A DNA stretch of 64,000 nucleotides, taken from the NCBI GenBank assembly GCA_907165135.1, contig OU015569.1, positions 4,092,001 through 4,156,000 of the forward strand. The letters run 5' to 3'. Under the pieces are notes generated by a model that had not been told where the DNA came from, ran no database searches, and saw only the letters and a program-made list of their open reading frames with translations. Below, one piece after another: positions 1,057 through 20,488 of this stretch (positions within the stretch are counted from its first letter, which is position 1; each line of letters begins with the position of its first letter). The DNA comes from Oikopleura dioica. Lineage: Eukaryota; Animalia; Chordata. The position numbers and the translations under genes were made by a program.

Positions 1057-2608
1057 ATGTCAGACGACAAAAGAATGATTCAAGAAGAGATGGCTAAAAA
1101 AGAGAATGAGAAAGATGCAAGAAGGAGGTCGACTGCTAAGTGTGCTTCGATCACCCGCATTGTTGTTCTTGTTGTTGTTTTCTTCTCGTTCGGTGTTGGG
1201 ATTTATTAGAGCAAAAGTTAAGATGTTTAAATGATAAAAACAAAACCCACAAAGTGCTGTTCTCGGATTTTATGGACCCCTGATTCAGAAAGATACGTCG
1301 CTTCTTTTTGCTAGTGGACGAACTGTTCCGTTTGTAGACAGATATAGACTCAGCCATGAGAATCTGCCGTTGGAATGGTTTCATGAAGACATCTGTTTGA
1401 ACCACTCAAATGCCGACTGGGCGCTAGAAGGTAGAGTCATTGGTGGCAGCGACGGCGATATCAAAGACCATCCCTGGCAAGTATCGATTCAGTTCCGTCA
1501 AGATGGCCCAGGAGAGTTTCCATTCCAACATTTTTGTGGTGGAGCAGTCATTGCTCCAAGCGAGGATTAAAAATTTTTAATCATTTTTTATCATTTGATA
1601 ACTTTTTGAACAATTTTTTAAATCTCTTGTTTTTCATCCAGTCGAAAGTTTTGTCCTATCCGCTGCTCACTGCTTTGAAGGCGATTTGAAAAGTTGGAAA
1701 ATTTGGCCGAAGCTTTCAATTCTTGCTGGAAGTACTAAAACGAACATAGGATTGAGCCAACTCGCAGACTTGATCGGCGTTCAGACACGGAAGATAAATG
1801 CGGTGGAGATTCATCCGAGATGGGACAGCAAAACCTTTTACTATGATTTCGCACTTCTTATGCTCGACGAGAAACTTGTCTATCGCTATGGAGCACACGC
1901 AGTTCGACCGATTTGCATGCCGAAGTTAAACGAACAAGGATGGGCTTTCATATCTCATTTTAAAATGTGTCCTGAGACTATAGACTGAATAGCCTGAAAA
2001 GAAAATCATGATTTAGAGATTCTGCGCTTTCTCAAGACACATTCCATGACATGCAAGATTGCTGGCTGGGGCGTTACCGTAGCCGATGGACAAACTGCAA
2101 GTGAAAGGACTGGTTCAAGTTATCAAAAATCGCATATTTTTTCTATTCGTGTTCTTGACCATTTTCAAGCCTCAAAGTAGCGGATTTGCCATGGATTGAG
2201 TCCGGTCAATGCCAGAGATTGTTCAATCAAATGCGAAACTTGAATACGAGAGTCAGAATCCAAGATTTCCAGCTGTGTTTTGGCGTACTCGCTGGAGGAA
2301 CTGATGCGTGTCTAGGCGATTCTGGGGGCTCACTGTCATGTGAAATCGACGGCGTGCCTTTGAGTCTTGGCGTTGTAAGCTTTGGAATCGGTTGTGCCAA
2401 ACAAGGACATCCTGGAGTCTACGCCAGAACTTCATATGCAGCTGACTGGGCCATAAAATCCATGAAAAAGATGAACAACCTGAAGTTACGAAAAGGGTTC
2501 AGCGTTCCCCAACACTGGCAGAAAAGAGCTGAGTGCATGGACGAAGCAAATAGAAACACGAGAGCATGCAACGATCTTCTTCTACTTATGGGGAATGAAA
2601 CAAGTTAA
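1057..2608 (+). CDS. Type II transmembrane trypsin-like serine protease (S1A), 5 exons
   Basis: ATG 1057 MSDDKRMIQEE, then a hydrophobic segment IVVLVVVFFSFGVG. Activation site R|VIGG; catalytic motifs LSAAHC (His), YDFALLML (Asp), GDSGGSL (Ser). GTDAC suggests trypsin-like S1 Asp. Introns about 1200-1254, 1560-1641, 1939-2016, 2108-2169. Confidence 0.9.
1200..2169 (+). other. Four consecutive non-GT-donor introns (GA-AG, GC- or GG-AG, GA-AG, GA-AG)
   Basis: Frame and trypsin-motif continuity require donors GATTTA (1200), a non-GT donor near 1560, GATGGG (1939) and GACTGG (2108). Confidence 0.75.
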
Positions 2609-2940
2609 GGTTATCAGGGATGTAATTTATTTTCCAAATTGCATCGTAGAAATAGTTGAACAATTGATTCACATCCCCGACAGTGGCCAACATTCATCAC
2701 ATCGTCCGCCAATTTTATCAATAATTTATGTTCCTCTGCTTTCAATAATGTTATGTTCAACCTTTTAACATCTCAGTATGTATTACTGTTACTCGAAATA
2801 AAACTCATAGAAAGACAGAATTTCTTGCGTTAGTATTAAGACAAGTAAAAATTGTCTTAATGTCTTTGTTCATGAAGACGGAAATACTTTATTTCACATA
2901 TAAGCAGGGCAGGAAAGGAGAAAAAAGGACATAATAGCAG

Positions 2941-4264
2941 TTACAAGAGACCAGCCATTTCTGCCATAAAATTTTCATATGCTTTATCTTGATTCTTTGG
3001 CGGAGCTGGCTTAGCGACGGGTGGAGCAGGACGCGTCGACAGAGCCCTCGGCGTAAGTGCAGCATTGCTTCTTTTGTTTCCCCTCAATGAGCTCGGCATG
3101 AACATGGTATTTTGAGCTAAACTTTGTAAGGAAATAAATTACAAAATAGAATCACTTTTTGGACGGTTAATAACTGGTGCGGCCGAGAGCGTTTTTTGAT
3201 GGGTGGCTGACAACTTTTGAGCGCTCTCTGTGGCTCCTTTTGGTGCGTTGTAGGACGTTGGAGCAGATGAAATGTCTGGTGCCATTAAGCCCGTTGCGGG
3301 AACAGCTGGACGCATGAACGCTGCTTGTGCTGCAAATTGAGGAATTCCAGCAGATATTGGCTATGGATCAGTAAACGAACTATTCTATTCGGTAGTTCTT
3401 ACCATAGCATGCGCTTGCATAGCCGCGGCAGGATCAACAGGCCGAGGGTGGAATTGAACAGCATAAGGATTCCTCGTTCGATTATCGAGCGGAGGAATTC
3501 CAGGAGGTGGAGGAGGAGGATTTTCTTCTTCGCGCTCTCGAGCTTCTTGTCCGGCCAGAGCCAGAAGAGTGTTTTGAATCGTGCTGTCTTTCTGCGATGG
3601 CCGTTTATATCTCTTCTTTTCTAAAAATTGTTACAAAGAGTAAATTGGTTAGTTTATACCTGGTGGAGGCCCGGGAGGAGGGCCAGGTGGCCCAGAGGAC
3701 GCGCGAGAGGATGATGATGCTCCCATTCGTGGGGGAAGACCCATTGGCAAGGGGATCCCAGCGATGCCCGAGTCCGGAAGAGGGGCATCTGGAAGTGGAA
3801 TTTGGTCAACGGACCAGTTCTTTGCTTTCAATACAGCTTGGTACAAGCTTTGTTTTCTTTCTCTTTCTCGCTCATATTGATTGTAGTCATCTTGGTACTC
3901 TTTCCAAGTGTCCATTTTTCCGGCAGTTTTGTAGTACTCTAGAATCTGAAACGAAAGATCATCTACCGAGTCATCTTCAGTTTAGAACCTTGAAATAAGT
4001 AGCTTTCATTCGTTGCCGTTTTTCTTGCATGACTCTGTCGGCGTAAGGACATTCATTTTCAGCGTCGAATTCGAGATCGTCAAGTTTGGATAGCTCATCG
4101 AGGACTGAGTTTGGATTCTTGCTTTTGATGACTGCCTCGCGCACTGCTTCTCGCTGTTTTTTGTGCTTTTTGAGTTGCTTCTTTCGCTCCTCTTTCCGCG
4201 CCTGGTCAGTGGGGTTCATGTACTTTCCGCCCTTCGTAGAGGAGGTTTTCCGATTGCCCCCCAT
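2941..4264 (-). CDS. WBP11: WW domain-binding protein 11 (splicing factor SIPP1/NpwBP)
   Basis: N-terminus TSSTKGGKYMNPTDQARKEERKKQLKKHKKQR matches the Wbp11 family. Central proline-rich PPGPPPGPPP tracts. C-terminus DKAYENFMAEMAGLL* resembles the human ending; stop at 2941-2943. Confidence 0.92.
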
Positions 4265-4552
4265 CTTCCCCGAATAAAACTCTATAAAAAGGCAACTCAG
4301 TCGAAGTAAACCAATAATATTAACGAGAAGATTAATGGTTTAGCAAAGTCCTATTTCAAATTTTAACGTTTATTGGAACAGTTTTTGTCACAAAGGAGTG
4401 AATATTGTTGAACTCGACATAAAGTCGGAATAAATAGATCTAGCTGGAATGGGGAATTCCATCGCCAACTGTTTTAAACCAGTAGGGGGGAGCTTTTGAT
4501 GTTGTTTTAGGAGGTGAACAGATTTTTGGACAGAACAGATCTGGCTCCAGAA

Positions 4553-5244
4553 TTACTGGCAGTGGCCGTCCATGACTTCGCCGAAGACGGAGAAGATACC
4601 AGGGCCCTCGAGCGAGTCTTGCGAGCCAGAGTTGGCGATCAAAAGACAGAGGAGGCAGAAAGCAGCGTATGGCTTAGCCCATGTAGACTGGAGTTCTTCT
4701 TCGAGGCCCCAGACGTTGTGTCGTCTTAATTCGCTCGTTTTAAAGCATATATTTGGAGTGCTTATTTACCGGTATCGCTCGACGTTGGCCTTGAAGAGTC
4801 GAGGGTAAAAGTAGGCGGCTTCGTAGACGTCTTCGGTGAACCAGGAGCTCTGCTTCTGGAAGGGGTGGTAGACGGTAGCTAAATTGGTTAGAGTAAACGC
4901 CAACTCGGATTTCCCTGATTGTTACCCTTCTTTCGTCGGGCTTCGTACTCGTCAGCTCGCGAAAGAGCGGTCTTGAGGACGTGCTGCTCCCAGCCATCGA
5001 TGTCTTAATTATCGGTGTTAAAGGTCGATTCTACTACTGATGAATTACCCTTGAGCTGAGCGATGTGGGCGGCTTCGTTTCGCTTGGCAACCATCTCGGC
5101 GAAGGCAGGGGTGTCAGCAGGAATGTCCTGGTTGAAACCGAAGCCGTAGGTCTCTTCGTACTTGTCACCGACGAGAGATGGTGGAACACCGGCCGGGGTG
5201 GCGGCAAATCGCACAGGAACGGAAAGAACCCTTCGAGCCAGCAT
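4553..5244 (-). CDS. Uncharacterised, probably mitochondrion-targeted small membrane protein (4 exons)
   Basis: N-terminus MLARRVLSVPVRFAA is Arg-rich and acid-free, like a presequence. GT-AG splicing gives in-frame exons AQLK|DIDGWEQHVLK...RRKK|..VYHPFQKQSSWF..ERYR|..NVWGLEEELQSTWAKPYAAFCLLCLLIANS..GHCQ*. Family not recognised. Confidence 0.6.
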
Positions 5245-12393: not shown

Positions 12394-14164
12394 ATGGGGA
12401 AAATATTCATCGGCAATTTGACCGACAGGGCCGAAGGTCGCGATGTTGAAGACGCCTTCAGAAAATTTGGAAGAATCAAAGAGATTTCTCTTAAAAATGG
12501 CTTCGGTAAATAAGAGTGAATGTACAATTATTTTCAGGAAATTATTAGGCTTTGTCGAGTTTGAAGATGTCCGCGATGCTGAAGACGCAATTCATGAAAT
12601 GAATGGGGAGCGACTTTGCGGCGATAGAATTACTGTCGAGCTGGCGAAAGGTAAACATATTTTATCCACTCGTTTCTTATAAGTTTTGAAAGGCGGCGGC
12701 GGTGGAAGATATCGCTCGCGTTCACGGTCAAGAGGTCGAGACGGACGCAGCTCGTATTGGGACTCCCGAAGATCTGGTAGAGAACGACCGCATCGAACTC
12801 CTTACGCGGTTATGGTCGACAATTTGAGTAGCAGATGCACGTAAGTCGATTCGATTTCTTTGATGGCGAGAATCAAAAAATGGGCGAGACAAGATTTGGT
12901 GCCACTCACTTGGTTTTGTCTCGTTTCTCTCTGTGCTCCAAATCCTGGTCAAAAATTGTTGGGTTGTCGAAAAAGCTAGTTGGATAGTGACCTGTGGTGC
13001 CGTCCGTGATTGATACTGGCATATTCTCTCTATCTCTTGCTACTATTCATGTGTCTTTCATGAGACCATTGATCTGAAATCTTTTGTACTGAATGATCTC
13101 TGGTGTCTACAGCTGAACTCTGTTTTGGCGTGGCTGTTCGATAACCAAGTTGGACGCCTTGGTGGCATAATTGTAGAACTGATTCACATCATGGCCAACT
13201 ACTCTTTTCTTACCCGGTATTGTCACTTTTCTTGACCCATTTCTATTAACTCTAACTTCCAATTATCGCAAGTCCAGTTTACGCTTATGGAGCTGAAATA
13301 TACTCTGATCTCTGAGTTATTTGTTCTTTAGGTGGGCCGAGTTGAAGGACATTTTCCGCAAATTTGGTGAAGTGACATATACAGATGCTCACTACAGATC
13401 TGGTGATGGGAGAGGCGAAGTCTGTTTTTCTTCCCGAGAAGAGCAAGATCGTTGTCTGGACGAAGCCGATGGCATGGATATCAACGGAAGAAGTAAGTCC
13501 CTTCGAAACGCTCAAGTCTTTTAACGTTCTCGATAAGGCATCAAAGTTTCGCCTGGAGAAGGTGCTGATCAACGAGAGCGATCACGCGGAAGATACTCTC
13601 GAAGTCGATCTCGAAGCAGATCCCGTGGCCGAGGTGGTCGAGGCGGAGGTCGAGGAGACAGATCTCGCCCCCATCGAACAGAGTTTACTCTCGGCGTCGA
13701 TAACCTCTCTTCCCGCTGCGAGTATGTCCTCTTATTTCTATCGGCAATAATTTGTGTTCTTAGTTGGGCGGAACTAAAGGATCTCATGCGAAAAGCTGGA
13801 GAAGTTACATACGTTGACGCTCACACCCGCTCAGGTCGAGGTAATTGATTGACTTTGAAACGCCTCCGTACTTAAAATCGCATAGGTCGGGGAGAAGCTT
13901 GCTTTGCTACCCGGGAGGAGTTGTATCGCGCTCTCGAGGACTTACAGGGTATGAAAATCTACGATCGTGCTGTGAGACTGCGCGTCAAAGAAGACGGCGA
14001 TCGAGATGTCCGTCGATCGAGGTAAGTCGGTGTTTGTGGTGACTTGCGGTGAACCGTTTTTATCTAATAGATCCTACTCTCGCTCTCGTAGTCGATCGCG
14101 CTCACGATCCCGCAATGGTGCCCGTTCGAGGTCACGATCGCGAAGCCGTTCCCGCAGCCGATAA
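12394..14164 (+). CDS. SRSF4/5/6-family SR splicing factor with one canonical RRM and two pseudo-RRMs
   Basis: RRM1 KIFIGNL...[19 protein letters not shown]. Pseudo-RRM copy [30 protein letters not shown]; copy [32 protein letters not shown] tracts between the domains and at the C-terminus; 8 exons. Confidence 0.92.
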
Positions 14165-14755
14165 AGCGATTCTGTCACGTGAAACATCGATAACGCATAT
14201 GATAAATTTTAACCTTTGATCAAACAAAACCCTCTTCATATTTGGAATTTCGAATTCCAACTCCGTAGCTTTAAATCATCGTCTTACTTCAAAAGACACT
14301 TTCAAATTCAACGAAACGTGCAATGTTTGGATGAGTAGGAGAGTGCCGTCTGGAGAAACTCGTTCAAGTCACCAGATTCACCCTTTTTTCTACAATTTTC
14401 TGGCCTCGGTTCATTAAACCGTTAAAATCCTATCTTCATGATTATTTTTGCTATATTTTCAATTTTCAAAGTTGAAGCGCCGTGAATATTCCAAAACTAA
14501 CAATAAACCTTCAATGTAGGCTTCCGAAGCCAGCGTGCAATATACTAGTCAAATAATGTCCTCATGTTCATGAGCCTCATGAGGTTCTTATGTGTTCTTT
14601 CTTTCCTAGAGATGACAAATAGCAGGCGTAGTCATTGTTAGTGTAACACGAGTTTTCGCCTCTTCTTTCAACCTTGGTACTAAGAAGTGTTATTAAGAAC
14701 TAAGTGCAGGATTCGTTTCGCTTCCAACTTCATCTTAAAAAGCGACTAGTTAGAA

Positions 14756-17393
14756 ATGGCGTGGCAGCAGCAAGGCTACAATCAAAATCACGGAGGCGGT
14801 CAAGGCTACGGCCAAAGCAATCAGTATGGACAGCAACAGCAGTTTAATCAGCATCAGCAATATGCGGCGCAAGTGCTTTACGGAGGGCAGTCACAAGGAT
14901 ACAACCAAGGAAATAACTGGAGTGCGGGTCCGTCCAATATGAACAAGGGACCTGGTCATTTCGGGAACTCACACCGAGTAAGATTCACTCTAATTTTCCG
15001 CAATAACAAATATCTTTTCAAAGAATCCAAATTACGGATACGGGGAGCAAAGGTACAATGGTCAGGAGGCAATCAAAATCAGCATAACTTGATGCCACAT
15101 CGTGGTCAACGTCCAATGAGCCAGAACAACCGACAAACTCAACGTCAAAAAGACCCACATAAGCCAATCAACGCTACAGAGGTCAAATCATATATAAATG
15201 CATGGGCAACAAAACAGAAGCTAAAGGTGCGCCTTGTTAAAAATACTTATATGACTTGTGATGCTTCAGCCAGAGTACTCTTATAAACAAGAAGGGCAAA
15301 CTCCATTTGTGCTTTATAAATGTACGCTCTCCATCGGTCAATACGACTGCCAAGGCGAAGGGGCTGCAAAAAGCAAGAAACAAGCGCAAACGATTGCAGC
15401 CTGGGATATGTCAGAAAAGCTTGCAGCAAAAGGAGTCCTTAACCTTTCGGAAGTTCCACCTATCCCCGAAAATCTACTCGGTGCTCATGCTACCAAGACT
15501 GCGAATCGGGTTGAAGGAAACAATGAAAATGTTTATGTTGAATACGGTGAAGAATATGGCGGTTGGACAACGGAAACTGCAAGACAACGTCTGAACAGAT
15601 TCTGCATGCAATTGGGGATTAGTTGCAACATCATTAACCATGTCACTGGACCTCCACACGCTAGAGTCACCTCTGCATCCCTGTCGTTGATAATCGAGCG
15701 GCTCAACAAAAAAGTTCTTCAAGTCCAAGTTGATGCTCCAAACAAGAAGTCAGCAAATGCAAAATGCTCCATGGAGATGCTAAAACAGCTTTTTGCTCTC
15801 AATCTTATTGAGAAAAAAGGTGAACCAGAGATGAAGCTCTTGCGTAAAAGGTAATGTCAACTGTGACGCACAGAAAAAAAACGCTTTTCATAGAAAGAAT
15901 GAAATCACCTGGACAAGGACGACGGCCCCTAGTCGGTTGAAAAAATTCAAGGAAGAAAATTCTGGTGACAGCTCGTTTGGAATAAGCGAATCATCTGCCT
16001 TTCAAAACGGTCAATTCACAATCTCTACGGTCATCAATTGCAAGGGGATCAAAATTGAAGCACAAGCTTCCGAACCATCCGAAGAAGAAGCAAAGATATC
16101 GGTTGCAGTTATGCTTGCTAATAAGCTGTGCGTTGCAGGATTGATCGAAGCTAACTTGCCGGTAGCTAAAAGCAAGGTTATCATCTGAACAATAGTTGGA
16201 TGCCACATAATTTATTTTGTAGAAATCAAAAGAAGAATATCTTGCTAATATCCGACAGACCAACATCGTAATGGTCCCCCGTTTCAATAACACTGGCAGA
16301 AATACCCCAGGTGACGACCGCCAACTAAAAAAGAAACTGCTCGACCTCGAGCAAAAGGAAACTTACAAGCGACTCCGTGTCAACACAATGAACAAAATCA
16401 CTAAGTGTCTGAAGGAGTCGGAAAGTTATCCACAAATTGAAAACTTGCACAGAGTTGGCGAGTTTTTCAAGGGACTTGAACTTGCAGGTAACTATCGCTT
16501 AATTAATTCTGAAACTTATCTTTTTTTTTAAGACGAAACCGAGGACTTGGAGCTCGTTGTCGTCTCCAAAGAAAAACCCACGAATTCTTTTGTAAATGAA
16601 GTTCTTTCCGTACTTGCTTCTTTGGAAGGATTTACGGCAGATAGATACGAGGACTTCCTTTATCTTACGACTAAAGAGAAGCCGGAAGTATCTATCTACG
16701 TCACATTTACCTCAGCAGCATTTTATCCACCCGATGGTAAAGGTAAAACAGGTCATTCCCGCAAGAGAAAAACATTGTTTTTAGAAGAATGCGCAGATCC
16801 AGAAGGCATGATTCTTCGTGACGGATGCGTTAATGTCTGGATTCGACTTCAGCGTTGTCTGTTTTTGATGGATCGATGCCACAAGCTTTTCAACTCACTT
16901 GCCGTATTGCGTGTTTTGAAATTTCTGGCGCGAGATGCCGAGATGGATGGATTTTCTGGCTGGTTAATGGAACTGTTCGTCATCAGAGCTTTAGAAACTG
17001 CCCATAGTTCTGAACCAGCCGGAGATGCGCTCCGACGTGTTTTTTCCATCTTATCAGGAGGAATTCTACTGCCCAACGTCAGCTCTCTCATCGATTTGAA
17101 CGGAACTGACGACCTCTTAGACCAACTTACCGTTATTCAACGAAACAAAATCACTGCCAAGGCCCATACCTATCTTCGTCTCCAAACATTCAAGGTAAAG
17201 AAAAATAAAACACGCAGTATATTTTAGACTCTAAAATTTAGAGTTAAAATTATTAGCATCTTTGATTAAATATTTTTAGCAACTGCACAAAGTGCTTGGA
17301 ATCGACTTTGTCCAGAAAAAATCGTCGCTGAAAATTGAAGAACCGAAACCCACTTTTAATGAAAACGATAACAGCGTGGCACAAGCTAACTGA
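14756..17393 (+). CDS. G/Q/Y-rich N-terminus + DHX9-type dsRBD pair + third dsRBD-like segment + DZF (NF90/ZFR-type) domain protein
   Basis: EVKSYINAWATKQKLKPEY and GGWTTETARQRLNRF...NKKSANAKCSMEMLKQLFALNLIE resemble the DHX9 dsRBDs. RVGEFFKGLELAG..DLELVVVSKEKPT and GWLMELFV..AGDALRRVFSILSGGILLP..LRLQTFKQLHKVLG resemble the ILF3/ZFR DZF domain. Exons join in frame through GT-AG introns. Confidence 0.85.
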
Positions 17394-17615
17394 GTTATTT
17401 CCTGCCTCAAACAAGTCTTTTTGTTAGCTCTTAGTTTGAGTTATCGTCACCACGGTAGCTGCTAAGACGAGTTCCTGAATAAATATTCATTTATCGTTCA
17501 ATCCTAACGCTCTGACCAATTGATACCTATCTTGGTCAAAGCTGAATTATGAAGCTGTCTAGTAGTCGACACAAATTTAGCAGAAAAGTTAAAAGCAGGT
17601 TTCGCGCAGGTGCTT

Positions 17616-20488
17616 ATGAGCGAAAGAACAGCAAAAGCCATATTTGGAAATTTAAAAATATTTCGTAAAAAACATCGCCCACAAATTATGCTTAAATGGT
17701 CTCGCTCACTAAGAGATTTAAAAACAATGTCGCCCGTTTCTTTGGAATTTCAGGCAAGCCTCAATATTTTAATACGGCAGGCCTTGCCTTACTCTTAATC
17801 GTAGGGAGAGTTCACCTCTGAAGAGAGGAGTGCATGGCAGAATCGGTTCAGAGAGATGATGTCCGGTTAGTTATATTTATAAATGTAAGATAGCTAAACT
17901 CTGTAGAAATTACCGTCGATCGACCGCGCAGTAGCACGAGTAAGTTCAGTACTCTCAACACACCCGATCAGCCTAGCCCCGTTCAAAAGGCCCGGCTACG
18001 TAAACAACTACCCCTAGGTATATTTTTCTTTTTACTAAGACCGTACAGTAAGTGTTGTTTTATCAGCCTAAAAAGCAATGCAAAATTGTCTTGCACAAGA
18101 CCGACTCAAATGCGAATGAGATCGCAACGGGTTCTTTATCTCCGCAAAAGAAGAACTCCGTCGATGGCGTCGCAAGCTACATGGTTCCCGTTTCTGGCGA
18201 CTCGAATGAAAACGACATTCGCTGTATTCGCGACATCGTCGAGAGGTTTCACTCCACTGGGGGAGAAATTAGCTGGGCTAGTTATCGCTCATTGCCAAGA
18301 GTGAAGCCGATGCGCGCGAACACTGCAGATAGTGCGAGTATGTGCTCACACGTCATTGCCGAACACCTCGACTTAGTCAATAAATTTATTGGACACCAGA
18401 AGTTTCTGAAGGCATCGAGTTTTATTGGATTGTAGGACGCATCACTGATGCGGGATCACATAGCTTTAATAAACTCTTAAAAGTACATAATGATAGAGAA
18501 TCAGCGATACAAAACCTCGTGCTACATTCAGCCGCATATCGCCCAGTGTATCTTCAAATACACAGACTACTTCATCCAGGCATACTCTGAAAACAGCATG
18601 AAAGTCTGCGGCATCATAAACCTTCCATTCCCCAGTAACGTTGAAGAATTCTTTCGTATCCAAGAAGACTTCTTTTCGGACCATTTTGTTGACGTCTCTT
18701 CGAAATATGCAGATTCCGGATATGAGATTCGTGAGCACGCGAAGCTACTAGGTAATTTTACGTTCTTTAAAAGTATTGATATTTTTTTCAAGACAAAGAA
18801 CGACTCAGCAAGGACATGAACTGTCCGAAGTATCGATTCTGGACTGATATCTTTGAATACGGAAAAGAAAATGCGGAGTACTTCTTAGAGCGCCAAACGT
18901 TTGCTGATCTTTTTGCGGAAAGAAATCAAAAATTCATCCAAATGAAGAACGTGTGCGAGGTAACTTTTGGAAACAGGATACACTTTAATACTGCTTGAAG
19001 CGGCTCTACTCAACGTATGAGAAGTACGACAGTGGAAAATTCACTCGTGCGATGCGTTTTATAAATGTGCAGGTAAGTCTCCTCGTTGATTTCATCAACA
19101 AATAAACTCAATTTCAAGGTCAAAGCGATTGAAAATAAACTCAAAGAAAAGCAACAACAATACCGACATTTTGAGTTTTACGCAACCGTTCAAGACTTTC
19201 CTCCGCTGGAAGCTCATCGTGCTGGAGTTGGTTTTATTTTCGAAGCACGTGCCCTGCCCCTGGAAAAAGTGGAGACGGAGATTCTTTATCCCTCCGAGCC
19301 GACTTCTACTCCGATCGAAGAAGATGTCATGGGCCATTTGTCACACGAAGAACTTTATAATACAACTGACAAACTTCGCCTGGCATTTTACGATGAGTTC
19401 ATGATTGTAAGTTCATATCAAGTCCCACTGGCACTGATTACTGCTTTAGATTTGCAAGAAAGAACGTTCGAAACATTATCGAACGTTACAAAGAAAGAGA
19501 TCAGGAAGAAGTTGGAAATTTTGCGAGCTGATTCCTTACTATCACATAACAAAGATTATCCAGGTACCGTTTTTAAAGAAATTTCTACTGACAGGAATTT
19601 AGGACGTGAAAGCTTCGCCCCATTTTGCGGTTGTTTGCGAAGGAGGAGGACGAAGGCTTCTTCTGGAATACCAAAGCTCATCAGAATACAAATCCTTCGA
19701 CGATTTCGTTAAAGGTTTTTGAATTGATAGTGAGAGAGCGTGACCAAAGTATAGGATTCTTCGACGTCGTGGAGAAGAGATTAAAAGAAGTGGACGGGAT
19801 CGTCGAGTTTTCAAAGATCGAGATGGGGCTTCGAGGAACTAAGCGGATAGTGCCTTTCTTCCGAACGTCAGGTGGCAGAGCCAATATCGCCCCTGAACTC
19901 GCTCTTCTGCAATCGAGAGTTCAAATTCAATACGTTGAAACGGTTGGCTCTTGTTTATAAAATACCTTAACCTTCGACTATCTCTAGGTGAACAAATGGG
20001 ACATGAGAGTGTCTCCTTTCATCGGCAGAAGAAGCGATCATATGCGAAGATCGAAAAAGCGGGAGGGATCGTCTGGAGAGTTGACACTTCCAAAGGTAGA
20101 CAAAAATTGTCTGTATTTGTTCAAAATTATAATAAGTACGATCTCATTCGTCCACACGCTTACAAACCATGGACTTCAACCTTCAAACTGTCCGATTCAC
20201 TGACACACATTTCTCCAACTAAAATGGGCTTTCCTCGGTAAGAAATTTCAAACTGCAACGATCAAATTAAATATAACTCTTTATAGAAGCCAAACGTGCT
20301 TTTCAATGTACGAAGGATTGATGAGGACTACCTCAATGAGATCGGTCTCGTCTTTGAATTCATACCGAAGTCATCTCAACAACTCGGCGAACAATTTGGA
20401 TGAATGCAACGAGTCGCCAAATATTCTCGAGCATGCGTCTGGCGACGACGTTTTCCTCAGTCACAATGTTGAGAAACTTGTCATTTAA
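17616..20488 (+). CDS. Large multi-exon uncharacterised protein; boundaries approximate
   Basis: A chain of + strand ORF segments (18052, 18490, 18816, 19086, 19625, 19988, 20306) separated by short introns, including a GC donor CAG|GCAAGC near 17755. No family recognised. Confidence 0.6.

Follow-up and report, generated by a model that had tools for sequence, protein, structure and literature searches.

Is a protein that combines DHX9-type double-stranded RNA (dsRNA)-binding domains (dsRBDs) with a DZF domain a curiosity of one genome or a member of a family, and what would such a protein do? The question is raised by a plus-strand gene in a 64,000-nt stretch of Oikopleura dioica DNA (G000:C2:4092001-4156000, hereafter the window; the genome comprises 64.3 Mb in 19 contigs). 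An earlier note, made from the letters alone, had described an in-frame spliced open reading frame (ORF) that joins two dsRBDs, a dsRBD-like third segment and a DZF domain. This arrangement is confirmed by our gene model, by Pfam matches, by the ORF of an orthologous mRNA contig (L033), by an uninterrupted paralog (L021) and by a fold model. Within its lineage the gene is an ordinary one; it belongs to a tunicate-specific, undescribed variant of the DZF RNA-binding proteins. We consider it likely that positions 14698-17483 (+) hold a functional, spliced-leader trans-spliced O. dioica gene of a tunicate-restricted DZF family, in which a DHX9/MLE dsRBD1-dsRBD2 cassette and a third dsRBD precede a DZF domain of the ZFR/ILF3 class.

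Gene structure and transcript

ORF and splice-site modelling yielded one gene on the plus strand at window positions 14756-17393, with exons at 14756-15226, 15270-15850, 15894-16176, 16223-16487, 16533-16742, 16785-17194 and 17280-17393 (+). The introns of the model are very short (42-85 nt), the splice sites are all GT..AG, and a single frame is retained. The gene extends beyond the span first given for it, 15160-17310, with an N-terminal part from 14756 and a stop codon at 17391-17393. Likewise, the junctions first named, 15851 and 16178, denote donor sites, and the exons themselves end at 15850 and 16176. The features of the gene are as follows (L034 is a second mRNA contig from a related lineage).

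14698-14755 (+): inferred 5' untranslated region, adjoining a trans-splice acceptor (ttattaag followed by AACTAAGTGCAGG), from the mRNA contigs of relatives.
14756-15091 (+): low-complexity N-terminal coding part rich in Q, N, G and Y (MAWQQQGYNQ...), from the ORF listing and comparison with L033.
14978-15023 (+): likely intron of 46 nt, from the protein frame of L033.
15092-15226 (+): conserved Met (MPHRGQRPM...; Met-Pro kept in L033 and L034), then the first half of dsRBD1.
15167-15226 (+): helix alpha1 of dsRBD1, INATEVKSYINAWATKQKLK, from translation and alignment.
15227-15269 (+): GT..AG intron of 43 nt that interrupts dsRBD1 and is missing from the collinear L033 mRNA ORF.
15270-15461 (+): remainder of dsRBD1, of the DHX9/MLE dsRBD1 type, comprising its beta-sheet and the helix alpha2 that carries SKKQAQ (Pfam dsrm; MLE residues 20-83; tree).
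15558-15821 (+): dsRBD2 of the DHX9/MLE dsRBD2 type, with the GPPHAR loop and the helix-start motif NKKSANAK (Pfam dsrm, exon residues 105-174).
15851-15893 (+): GT..AG intron of 43 nt (splice sites and L033).
15904-16155 (+): degenerate dsRBD3, a dsRBD2-type copy (alignment to the dsRBD3 of paralogs and ascidian members; local hidden Markov model (HMM); fold model).
16177-16222 (+): GT..AG intron of 46 nt (splice sites and L033).
16232-17309 (+): DZF domain of the ZFR/ILF3 partner class, on four exons (Pfam DZF_C; L033 alignment; tree).
16488-16532, 16743-16784 and 17195-17279 (+): introns inside the DZF domain (gene model).
17126-17191 (+): DZF helix 9, LTVIQRNKITAKAHTYLRLQTF, predicted NF45 contact (alignment; interface residues from PMC3467086).
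17391-17393 (+): stop codon (gene model).
17478-17483 (+): AATAAA signal, 3' of the stop codon.

Searches and fold models used the window exons or the collinear L033 ORF as query; the joined (spliced) window protein served only for translation, identity and the comparison of non-synonymous (pN) with synonymous (pS) differences. L033 was retrieved by a metagenome contig search with the window dsRBD exon. It is a 2485-nt metatranscriptome contig with one 764-aa ORF, which is collinear with the whole gene model from MAWQQQ... through the C-terminus, matches Pfam dsrm and DZF_C, and is 71% identical to the window protein over 742 aligned residues (73% in the dsRBD exon). L034 is similar to L033. 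Both contigs begin with a spliced-leader sequence (...CCGATTTCGATTGTCTAACAG; L033:1-21 and L034:1-31), followed by alignment to the window stretch at 14698, and are therefore trans-spliced mRNAs. This leader matches the spliced leader of O. dioica; its 31-nt form has 53 sites in the genome of the window and none in the reversed control. A matching acceptor lies in the window between 14697 and 14698, which fits trans-splicing and, possibly, an operon. Furthermore, an RNA read of a related lineage has a loose end at 16731 that runs on into exon-7 sequence. Sequence words of the window also recur in marine plankton metatranscriptomes.

The earlier note had named separate transcripts for the dsRBD and DZF parts as one finding that would speak against it. 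This is not the case: L033 is a single ORF, and in the paralog L021 (positions 1724-3781, on C1) dsRBD1-3 and the start of the DZF domain (Pfam dsrm and DZF_N) lie in a single uninterrupted 686-aa ORF, so that the fusion there needs no splicing. P0003, a relative of L021, has a 1187-aa ORF that fills its 3960-nt contig and matches dsrm, DZF_N and DZF_C. As a separate observation, relatives of L021 carry an insertion of 300-470 residues between DZF_N and DZF_C (591-895 in P0002, 607-1076 in P0003). Between the window and L033, pN is 0.17 and pS 0.79 (saturated), alike in every domain, and we therefore conclude that the gene is under purifying selection.

Identity of the dsRBDs and of the DZF domain

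By sequence, the dsRBDs are of the DHX9/MLE type and stand in the same order as dsRBD1 and dsRBD2 of MLE. Pfam dsrm matches two stretches of exon 15270-15848 (E 2e-9). None of the exons has a match to a helicase or zinc-finger family, as first noted, and no helicase family matches the L033 ORF. The DHX9-like motifs that had drawn attention to the gene (EVKSYINAW, GGWTTETARQRLN and GPPHAR) are present. When the dsRBD exon was compared with all PDB sequences by phmmer, all 11 matches at E ≤ 1 were Drosophila MLE or human or mouse DHX9 (best E 5e-14), with no ILF3, ADAR, Staufen, TRBP or PKR domain among them. The order is collinear, the first half of the exon resembling MLE dsRBD1 and the second half MLE dsRBD2 (47.5 bits for dsRBD2 against MLE 162-249). 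We also built a tree of 74 dsRBDs from family members, helicase-verified DHX9s, the O. dioica DHX9, ILF3/STRBP and other dsRBDs of the genome, using only its well-supported groupings because it is short (99 columns). One clade unites all family dsRBD1 with all DHX9 dsRBD1 (Shimodaira-Hasegawa-like approximate likelihood ratio test, SH-aLRT, 97). Family dsRBD2 and DHX9 dsRBD2 cluster together with a support of 88, with family dsRBD3 beside them, and the ILF3/STRBP dsRBDs are placed elsewhere. The initial impression that the dsRBDs track DHX9 thus holds in motifs, structure-database matches and tree alike.

Single-exon Pfam missed the third dsRBD, which was recovered by comparison with paralogs, with a local HMM and by fold modelling. 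In the window it carries the acidic stretch SEEEAKIS (16078-16101) in place of the basic NKKxAQKK, and it aligns with bona fide dsRBD3 in paralogs and ascidian members. It matches the local dsRBD HMM with E 3e-4, and its AlphaFold model has the alpha-beta-beta-beta-alpha order with a predicted local distance difference test (pLDDT) of 86. The best Foldseek matches of this domain include MLE and DHX9 dsRBD2 (3vyx; template modelling scores, TM, 0.72/0.71). In the dsRBD tree, the window dsRBD3 forms a very long branch without placement. The third dsRBD probably arose by duplication of dsRBD2.

At the C-terminal end, DZF_C (PF20965) matches 16787-17194 with E 3e-12 and 47 bits, against a cut-off of 24.3 (47.2 bits in the genome scan). 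The phmmer alignment spans the whole domain, with L033 query residues 480-739 aligned to the DZF domains of ZFR, ILF3 and STRBP at E values as low as 8e-24, and the Pfam threshold for DZF_N (PF07528) is reached in paralogs and ascidian members. An exhaustive phmmer search of the L033 ORF against 1.84 billion representatives gave 280 matches at E ≤ 1e-3, of which the best outside the family are ZFRs (E about 1e-24 to 1e-20), along with ILF3s and STRBPs; all of these, ILF3-type proteins included, match the query only within the DZF domain (residues about 480-740). DZF matches of ~390 aa, considered as NF45, were dropped as ZFR fragments, and the NF45 sequences came from a separate search.

In a careful DZF tree, NF45 is split from all other DZF domains with a support of 100/100. 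The window DZF is therefore assigned to the NF45-partner class, in line with the NF90/ZFR type first proposed, and nothing further is claimed from this tree: neither the donor lineage nor the order of events was inferred from it. ILF3/STRBP form a clade (100/100) without tunicate sequences, the remaining backbone is without resolution, and the three-dsRBD family is monophyletic with a support of only 40/50. A quick DZF tree had put the window clade in a basal position, by long-branch effects.

Members of the family in tunicates

Searching the genome in six frames with DZF_C, DZF_N and the dsRBD exon, we found seven dsRBD-DZF genes. Five loci have dsRBD1-2-3 just 5' of a DZF domain of equal strand (the window gene, C1:4.757M, C1:8.17M, C1:14.447M and C2:8.27M). 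The other two combine a single DHX9-type dsRBD1 with a DZF domain (C2:9.347M, where one zf-met finger is kept, and C4:12.72M). The window gene and L033 form, with P0009 and P0010, a subfamily on a long DZF branch. The nearest database protein of one paralog is from O. dioica (94% identity).

The same genome holds three NF45/ILF2-like genes at C4:3.01M (L026), C4:11.33M (L027) and C2:11.336M (L028). All three have an N-terminal clamp extension of the (F/V)IPH(I/V)PFDF type and the helix-9 D/Q/R residues, and one of these loci matches P0207, a named protein of O. dioica. Seven partner-class DZF genes and three NF45-like genes in a compact genome suggest a lineage-specific expansion of the heterodimer system. 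A separate, intact DHX9 lies at C1:7.01M (L030), with its own dsRBD1 and dsRBD2, a DEIH helicase core and an RGG tail.

Among the DZF loci found in this search, none has the ILF3 domain order, and no canonical ILF3 was found in the genome. The gene at C2:9.347M is ZFR-like (L025; G000:C2:9343500-9350500, minus 3585-4808), with a DHX9-type dsRBD1, an 'NFVGG' stretch, one zf-met finger and a DZF domain. L025 appears to be an intermediate that links classical ZFR with the three-dsRBD family. The tunicate ZFR-likes P0224 (Phallusia 'ZF(C2H2)-54') and P0225 share the L025 layout; in ascidian ZFR-likes, the Clavelina 'zinc finger RNA-binding protein-like' among them, a single dsrm and a single zf-met finger accompany the DZF domain. 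No dsrm was present in the ZFRs of other animals among those listed by the search. The one-finger ascidian ZFR-likes fit the published remark that a Ciona Zfr-like protein carries just a single annotated zinc finger (PMC3467086).

Outside this genome, the exhaustive protein search returned 13 cluster representatives with DHX9-type dsRBDs N-terminal to a DZF domain. Those that bear a species name all come from tunicates (Phallusia mammillata, Styela clava and Ciona intestinalis), and the others are unnamed metatranscriptome clusters. Clavelina lepadiformis and the full-length LOC100181347 of Ciona came from an additional search. In these ascidian members the Pfam order is three dsrm, DZF_N and DZF_C. 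Unnamed metatranscriptome clusters aside, the exhaustive search yielded no named non-tunicate member, an absence that is meaningful because proteins with both domain types should outrank DZF-only matches. The label 'RNA helicase' on P0027 (UniRef F7AFE0, Ciona) and P0217 (Clavelina) is a misnomer, as neither has a helicase domain, and was evidently transferred from their DHX9-like dsRBDs. In the literature on Oikopleura or Ciona with DZF, ILF3 or ZFR, we found no description of a dsRBD-DZF family. The architecture, which the earlier note did not know from elsewhere, is therefore no one-off chimera; it defines an undescribed family that is present in every tunicate sampled.

This distribution bears directly on the idea with which the gene was introduced, namely a unique 'Rosetta-stone' chimera that would report and hard-wire a partnership of DHX9 with NF90/NF45. 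The DHX9 type of the dsRBDs and a DZF domain of the NF45-partner class, a predicted NF45 binder, are what such a chimera would show. However, the gene belongs to a multigene family with seven loci here and further members in Ciona, Phallusia, Clavelina and Styela, and the copied part is only a dsRNA-binding cassette of generic kind and nothing of the helicase, while the DHX9 of the species retains its own dsRBDs. Moreover, NF45 is pan-metazoan and NF90/SPNR are vertebrate-only (PMC3467086), so that a fusion in tunicates, which are without NF90, cannot show a DHX9-NF90 link. We consider the Rosetta-stone explanation very improbable.

Alternatively, the gene could be a permuted tunicate ortholog of ILF3/STRBP, with dsRBDs and DZF domain both inherited from an ILF3 ancestor in Olfactores. 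Tunicates are the sister group of vertebrates, eight members of the family lay close to ZFR and ILF3/STRBP of vertebrates in the quick DZF tree, and the Q/G/Y-rich region may resemble the GQSY tail of ILF3. Yet the ILF3/STRBP clade of the careful tree excludes tunicates, its backbone giving no resolution beyond that, and the dsRBDs group with DHX9, with ILF3-type proteins matching in the DZF domain alone. In addition, the tunicate ZFR-likes pair the same DHX9-type dsRBD1 with a ZFR-type zinc finger, which points to a ZFR origin. Common descent with ILF3 thus has little probability, and a tunicate family with a DHX9-type cassette remains our preferred explanation.

Predicted NF45 pairing and comparison with known systems

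DZF heterodimers, in which NF45 joins ZFR or NF90, control splicing fidelity, adenosine-to-inosine editing and antiviral responses. If our assignment to a tunicate-restricted DZF family is correct, we would expect dsRBD1 and dsRBD2, whose RNA-contact motifs are kept, to bind dsRNA, and the C-terminal DZF domain to use helix 9 for pairing with an NF45/ILF2-like protein, one of the three in the genome. The protein would then act in RNA processing, joined to NF45 as the RNA-binding subunit of the pair; the role of this tunicate counterpart would match that of ZFR in other animals and of NF90/SPNR in vertebrates. In the window subfamily dsRBD3, its basic motif lost, would more likely serve as a spacer or protein-contact module than as an RNA binder.

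In the solved system, NF45 pairs with NF90, SPNR and Zfr via an antiparallel helix 9 (NF90 E312, Q319, R323 and F327), with a salt bridge from NF90 E312 to NF45 R319, and the interface is clamped by N- and C-terminal extensions of NF45 (PMC3467086). We modelled the complex of the O. dioica NF45-like protein P0207 with the L033 DZF region (residues 440-764). The model scored 0.84, and the best of three controls reached 0.39; the mark was attained by 51 of 78 solved complexes and by two of 108 mismatched pairs. Contact agreement between runs was at least 50%, with a partner pLDDT of at least 78. The predicted interface comprises helix 9 of both chains (residues 699-727 on the L033 side) and NF45 residues 39-65 and 362-373, as in the published geometry. 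As a similar complex has already been solved, the score indicates likeness and is not proof. The window DZF is predicted to heterodimerise with NF45 through helix 9.

For the NF45-dimerising scaffold of the earlier note, the predicted pairing speaks in favour and altered residues speak against: helix 9 of the window protein has N, H, R and F at the E312, Q319, R323 and F327 positions, keeping two of four, and the DPCEK motif is missing. These changes raise the possibility that the subfamily of the window, L033, P0009 and P0010 is no longer an NF45 partner and uses helix 9 for a homodimer or another partner. The N at the E312 position (H or Q in relatives), the H at Q319, the loss of DPCEK and the long branch of the subfamily speak for such a loss. 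Against it, the R323 and F327 equivalents are kept, the complex model pairs the chains via helix 9 well above its controls, and the HxPFDF-type extension, which clamps the partner, is retained in each of the three NF45 paralogs. We regard loss of pairing as unlikely, although it is the alternative to which we give most weight.

Several points weigh against the assignment to a functional, NF45-pairing tunicate family. DZF_N stays below the Pfam threshold in both the window exons and the L033 ORF, and helix 9 of the window subfamily is without the E312 and Q319 equivalents and its DPCEK motif is gone. The complex model may owe its high score to memory of the NF45-NF90 structure already solved, and it cannot say whether any of the three NF45 paralogs is bound, nor which one. 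The gene structure, the domain identities, the fusion in one ORF, mRNA expression in related lineages, purifying selection and the spread of the family are shown by the data, whereas the binding of dsRNA, the pairing with NF45 and the role in the cell are inferred. Three bulk and one single-cell species-labelled RNA runs showed near-zero mapping at ≥ 92% identity to window 14000-17800, their source being a divergent lineage; the junctions of the window itself consequently rest on canonical splice sites and orthologous mRNAs. Finally, the low-complexity N-terminal part is out of frame near 15062-15091 in the assembly. There, the L033 protein (...NPDYGYGSQRYNGN...) fits the window only in the frame obtained by excising 14978-15023; the frame after this intron reads NPNYGYGEQRYNGQ... 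and then meets a stop, and the rest of the gene lies in the +1 frame. At the same spot L034 has an in-frame stop and L033 is intact, and the conserved Met at 15092 follows directly 3'. Either the assembly is wrong by one base here, or the gene may really be split, with an upstream ORF ahead of a main ORF from Met 15092. A 45-nt non-canonical intron at 14978-15022 was considered and dropped, since the ortholog reads NPDYGYG... in the other frame.

The broken frame and the scarcity of mapped reads could also suggest an annotation artefact, with two genes wrongly joined, or a decaying pseudogene. Spliced-leader mRNA contigs of two related lineages, however, carry one collinear ORF, the constraint on amino-acid changes holds in all domains, and 665 codons follow Met 15092 without a stop. 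An artefact or pseudogene is accordingly extremely improbable, and an expressed member of the tunicate family is the explanation that we carry forward.

Building upon this assignment, one can turn to a broader matter, raised directly in bioRxiv 10.1101/2022.06.15.495552, namely why a second NF45 partner, based on dsRBDs, evolved beside ZFR in vertebrates. The sister group of vertebrates has built its own dsRBD-bearing, predicted NF45 partner from other parts, with DHX9-type dsRBDs placed N-terminally, and so offers a natural replicate, which argues that a link of canonical dsRBDs with the NF45 scaffold has brought an advantage more than once and allows a test of domain order and dsRBD type. 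More speculatively, tunicates might have rebuilt the RNA-binding arm of an ancient ZFR-NF45 system with a DHX9 cassette, in convergence with NF90/SPNR, and this arm might then have radiated into a paralog-specific pairing network. Diverged helix 9 and decayed dsRBD3 would, in that case, encode specialisation in pairing and RNA targets across seven partners and three NF45 paralogs, and so create a combinatorial set of heterodimers that bind dsRNA. We hold this scenario as a whole to be possible but doubtful. The analysis also corrects database labels ('RNA helicase', 'uncharacterized') for the ascidian members and flags a lineage-specific expansion, of seven partners and three NF45 paralogs, in a very compact genome; as Ciona is experimentally tractable, the family is open to direct study.

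The closest known counterparts of the window gene are the ascidian members LOC100181347 (Ciona), CAB3262648.1 (Phallusia), the Clavelina protein, XP_039252997.2 (Styela) and F7AFE0, which likewise have dsRBD1-2-3 and then DZF_N and DZF_C. They are ~30% identical to the Oikopleura copies, and their dsRBDs fall in the same tree clades. They differ from the window protein in being longer (834-1004 aa), in keeping E, Q, R and F of helix 9 together with DPCEK, and in an intact dsRBD3 with its KK motif. One gene is listed for each named ascidian species, compared with five three-dsRBD copies in O. dioica. We found no functional study of the ascidian members in the literature.

With DHX9/MLE, the window protein shares the N-terminal dsRBD1-linker-dsRBD2 cassette, in which motifs, order and spacing agree; it differs in being without the DEIH helicase core, the HA2/OB domains and the RGG tail. 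ILF3/NF90 and STRBP/SPNR resemble it in uniting a DZF domain and tandem dsRBDs in one protein, and both are dsRNA-binding NF45 partners via helix 9 (PMC3467086). Unlike the window protein, they place the DZF domain first, have dsRBDs of another lineage and form their own DZF clade without tunicates.

ZFR/Zn72D shares with the window protein a C-terminal DZF domain of the same class, a low-complexity N-terminus and dsRNA-binding modules N-terminal to the DZF domain. ZFR binds RNA by three widely spaced C2H2 (zf-met/JAZ) zinc fingers, whereas the window gene has none and a single one is left in L025 and ZF(C2H2)-54. NF45 is the partner of ZFR (PMC3467086; bioRxiv 10.1101/2022.06.15.495552). Between the two architectures stand the tunicate ZFR-likes as intermediates, in which a single DHX9-type dsRBD and a single zf-met finger are combined with a DZF domain.

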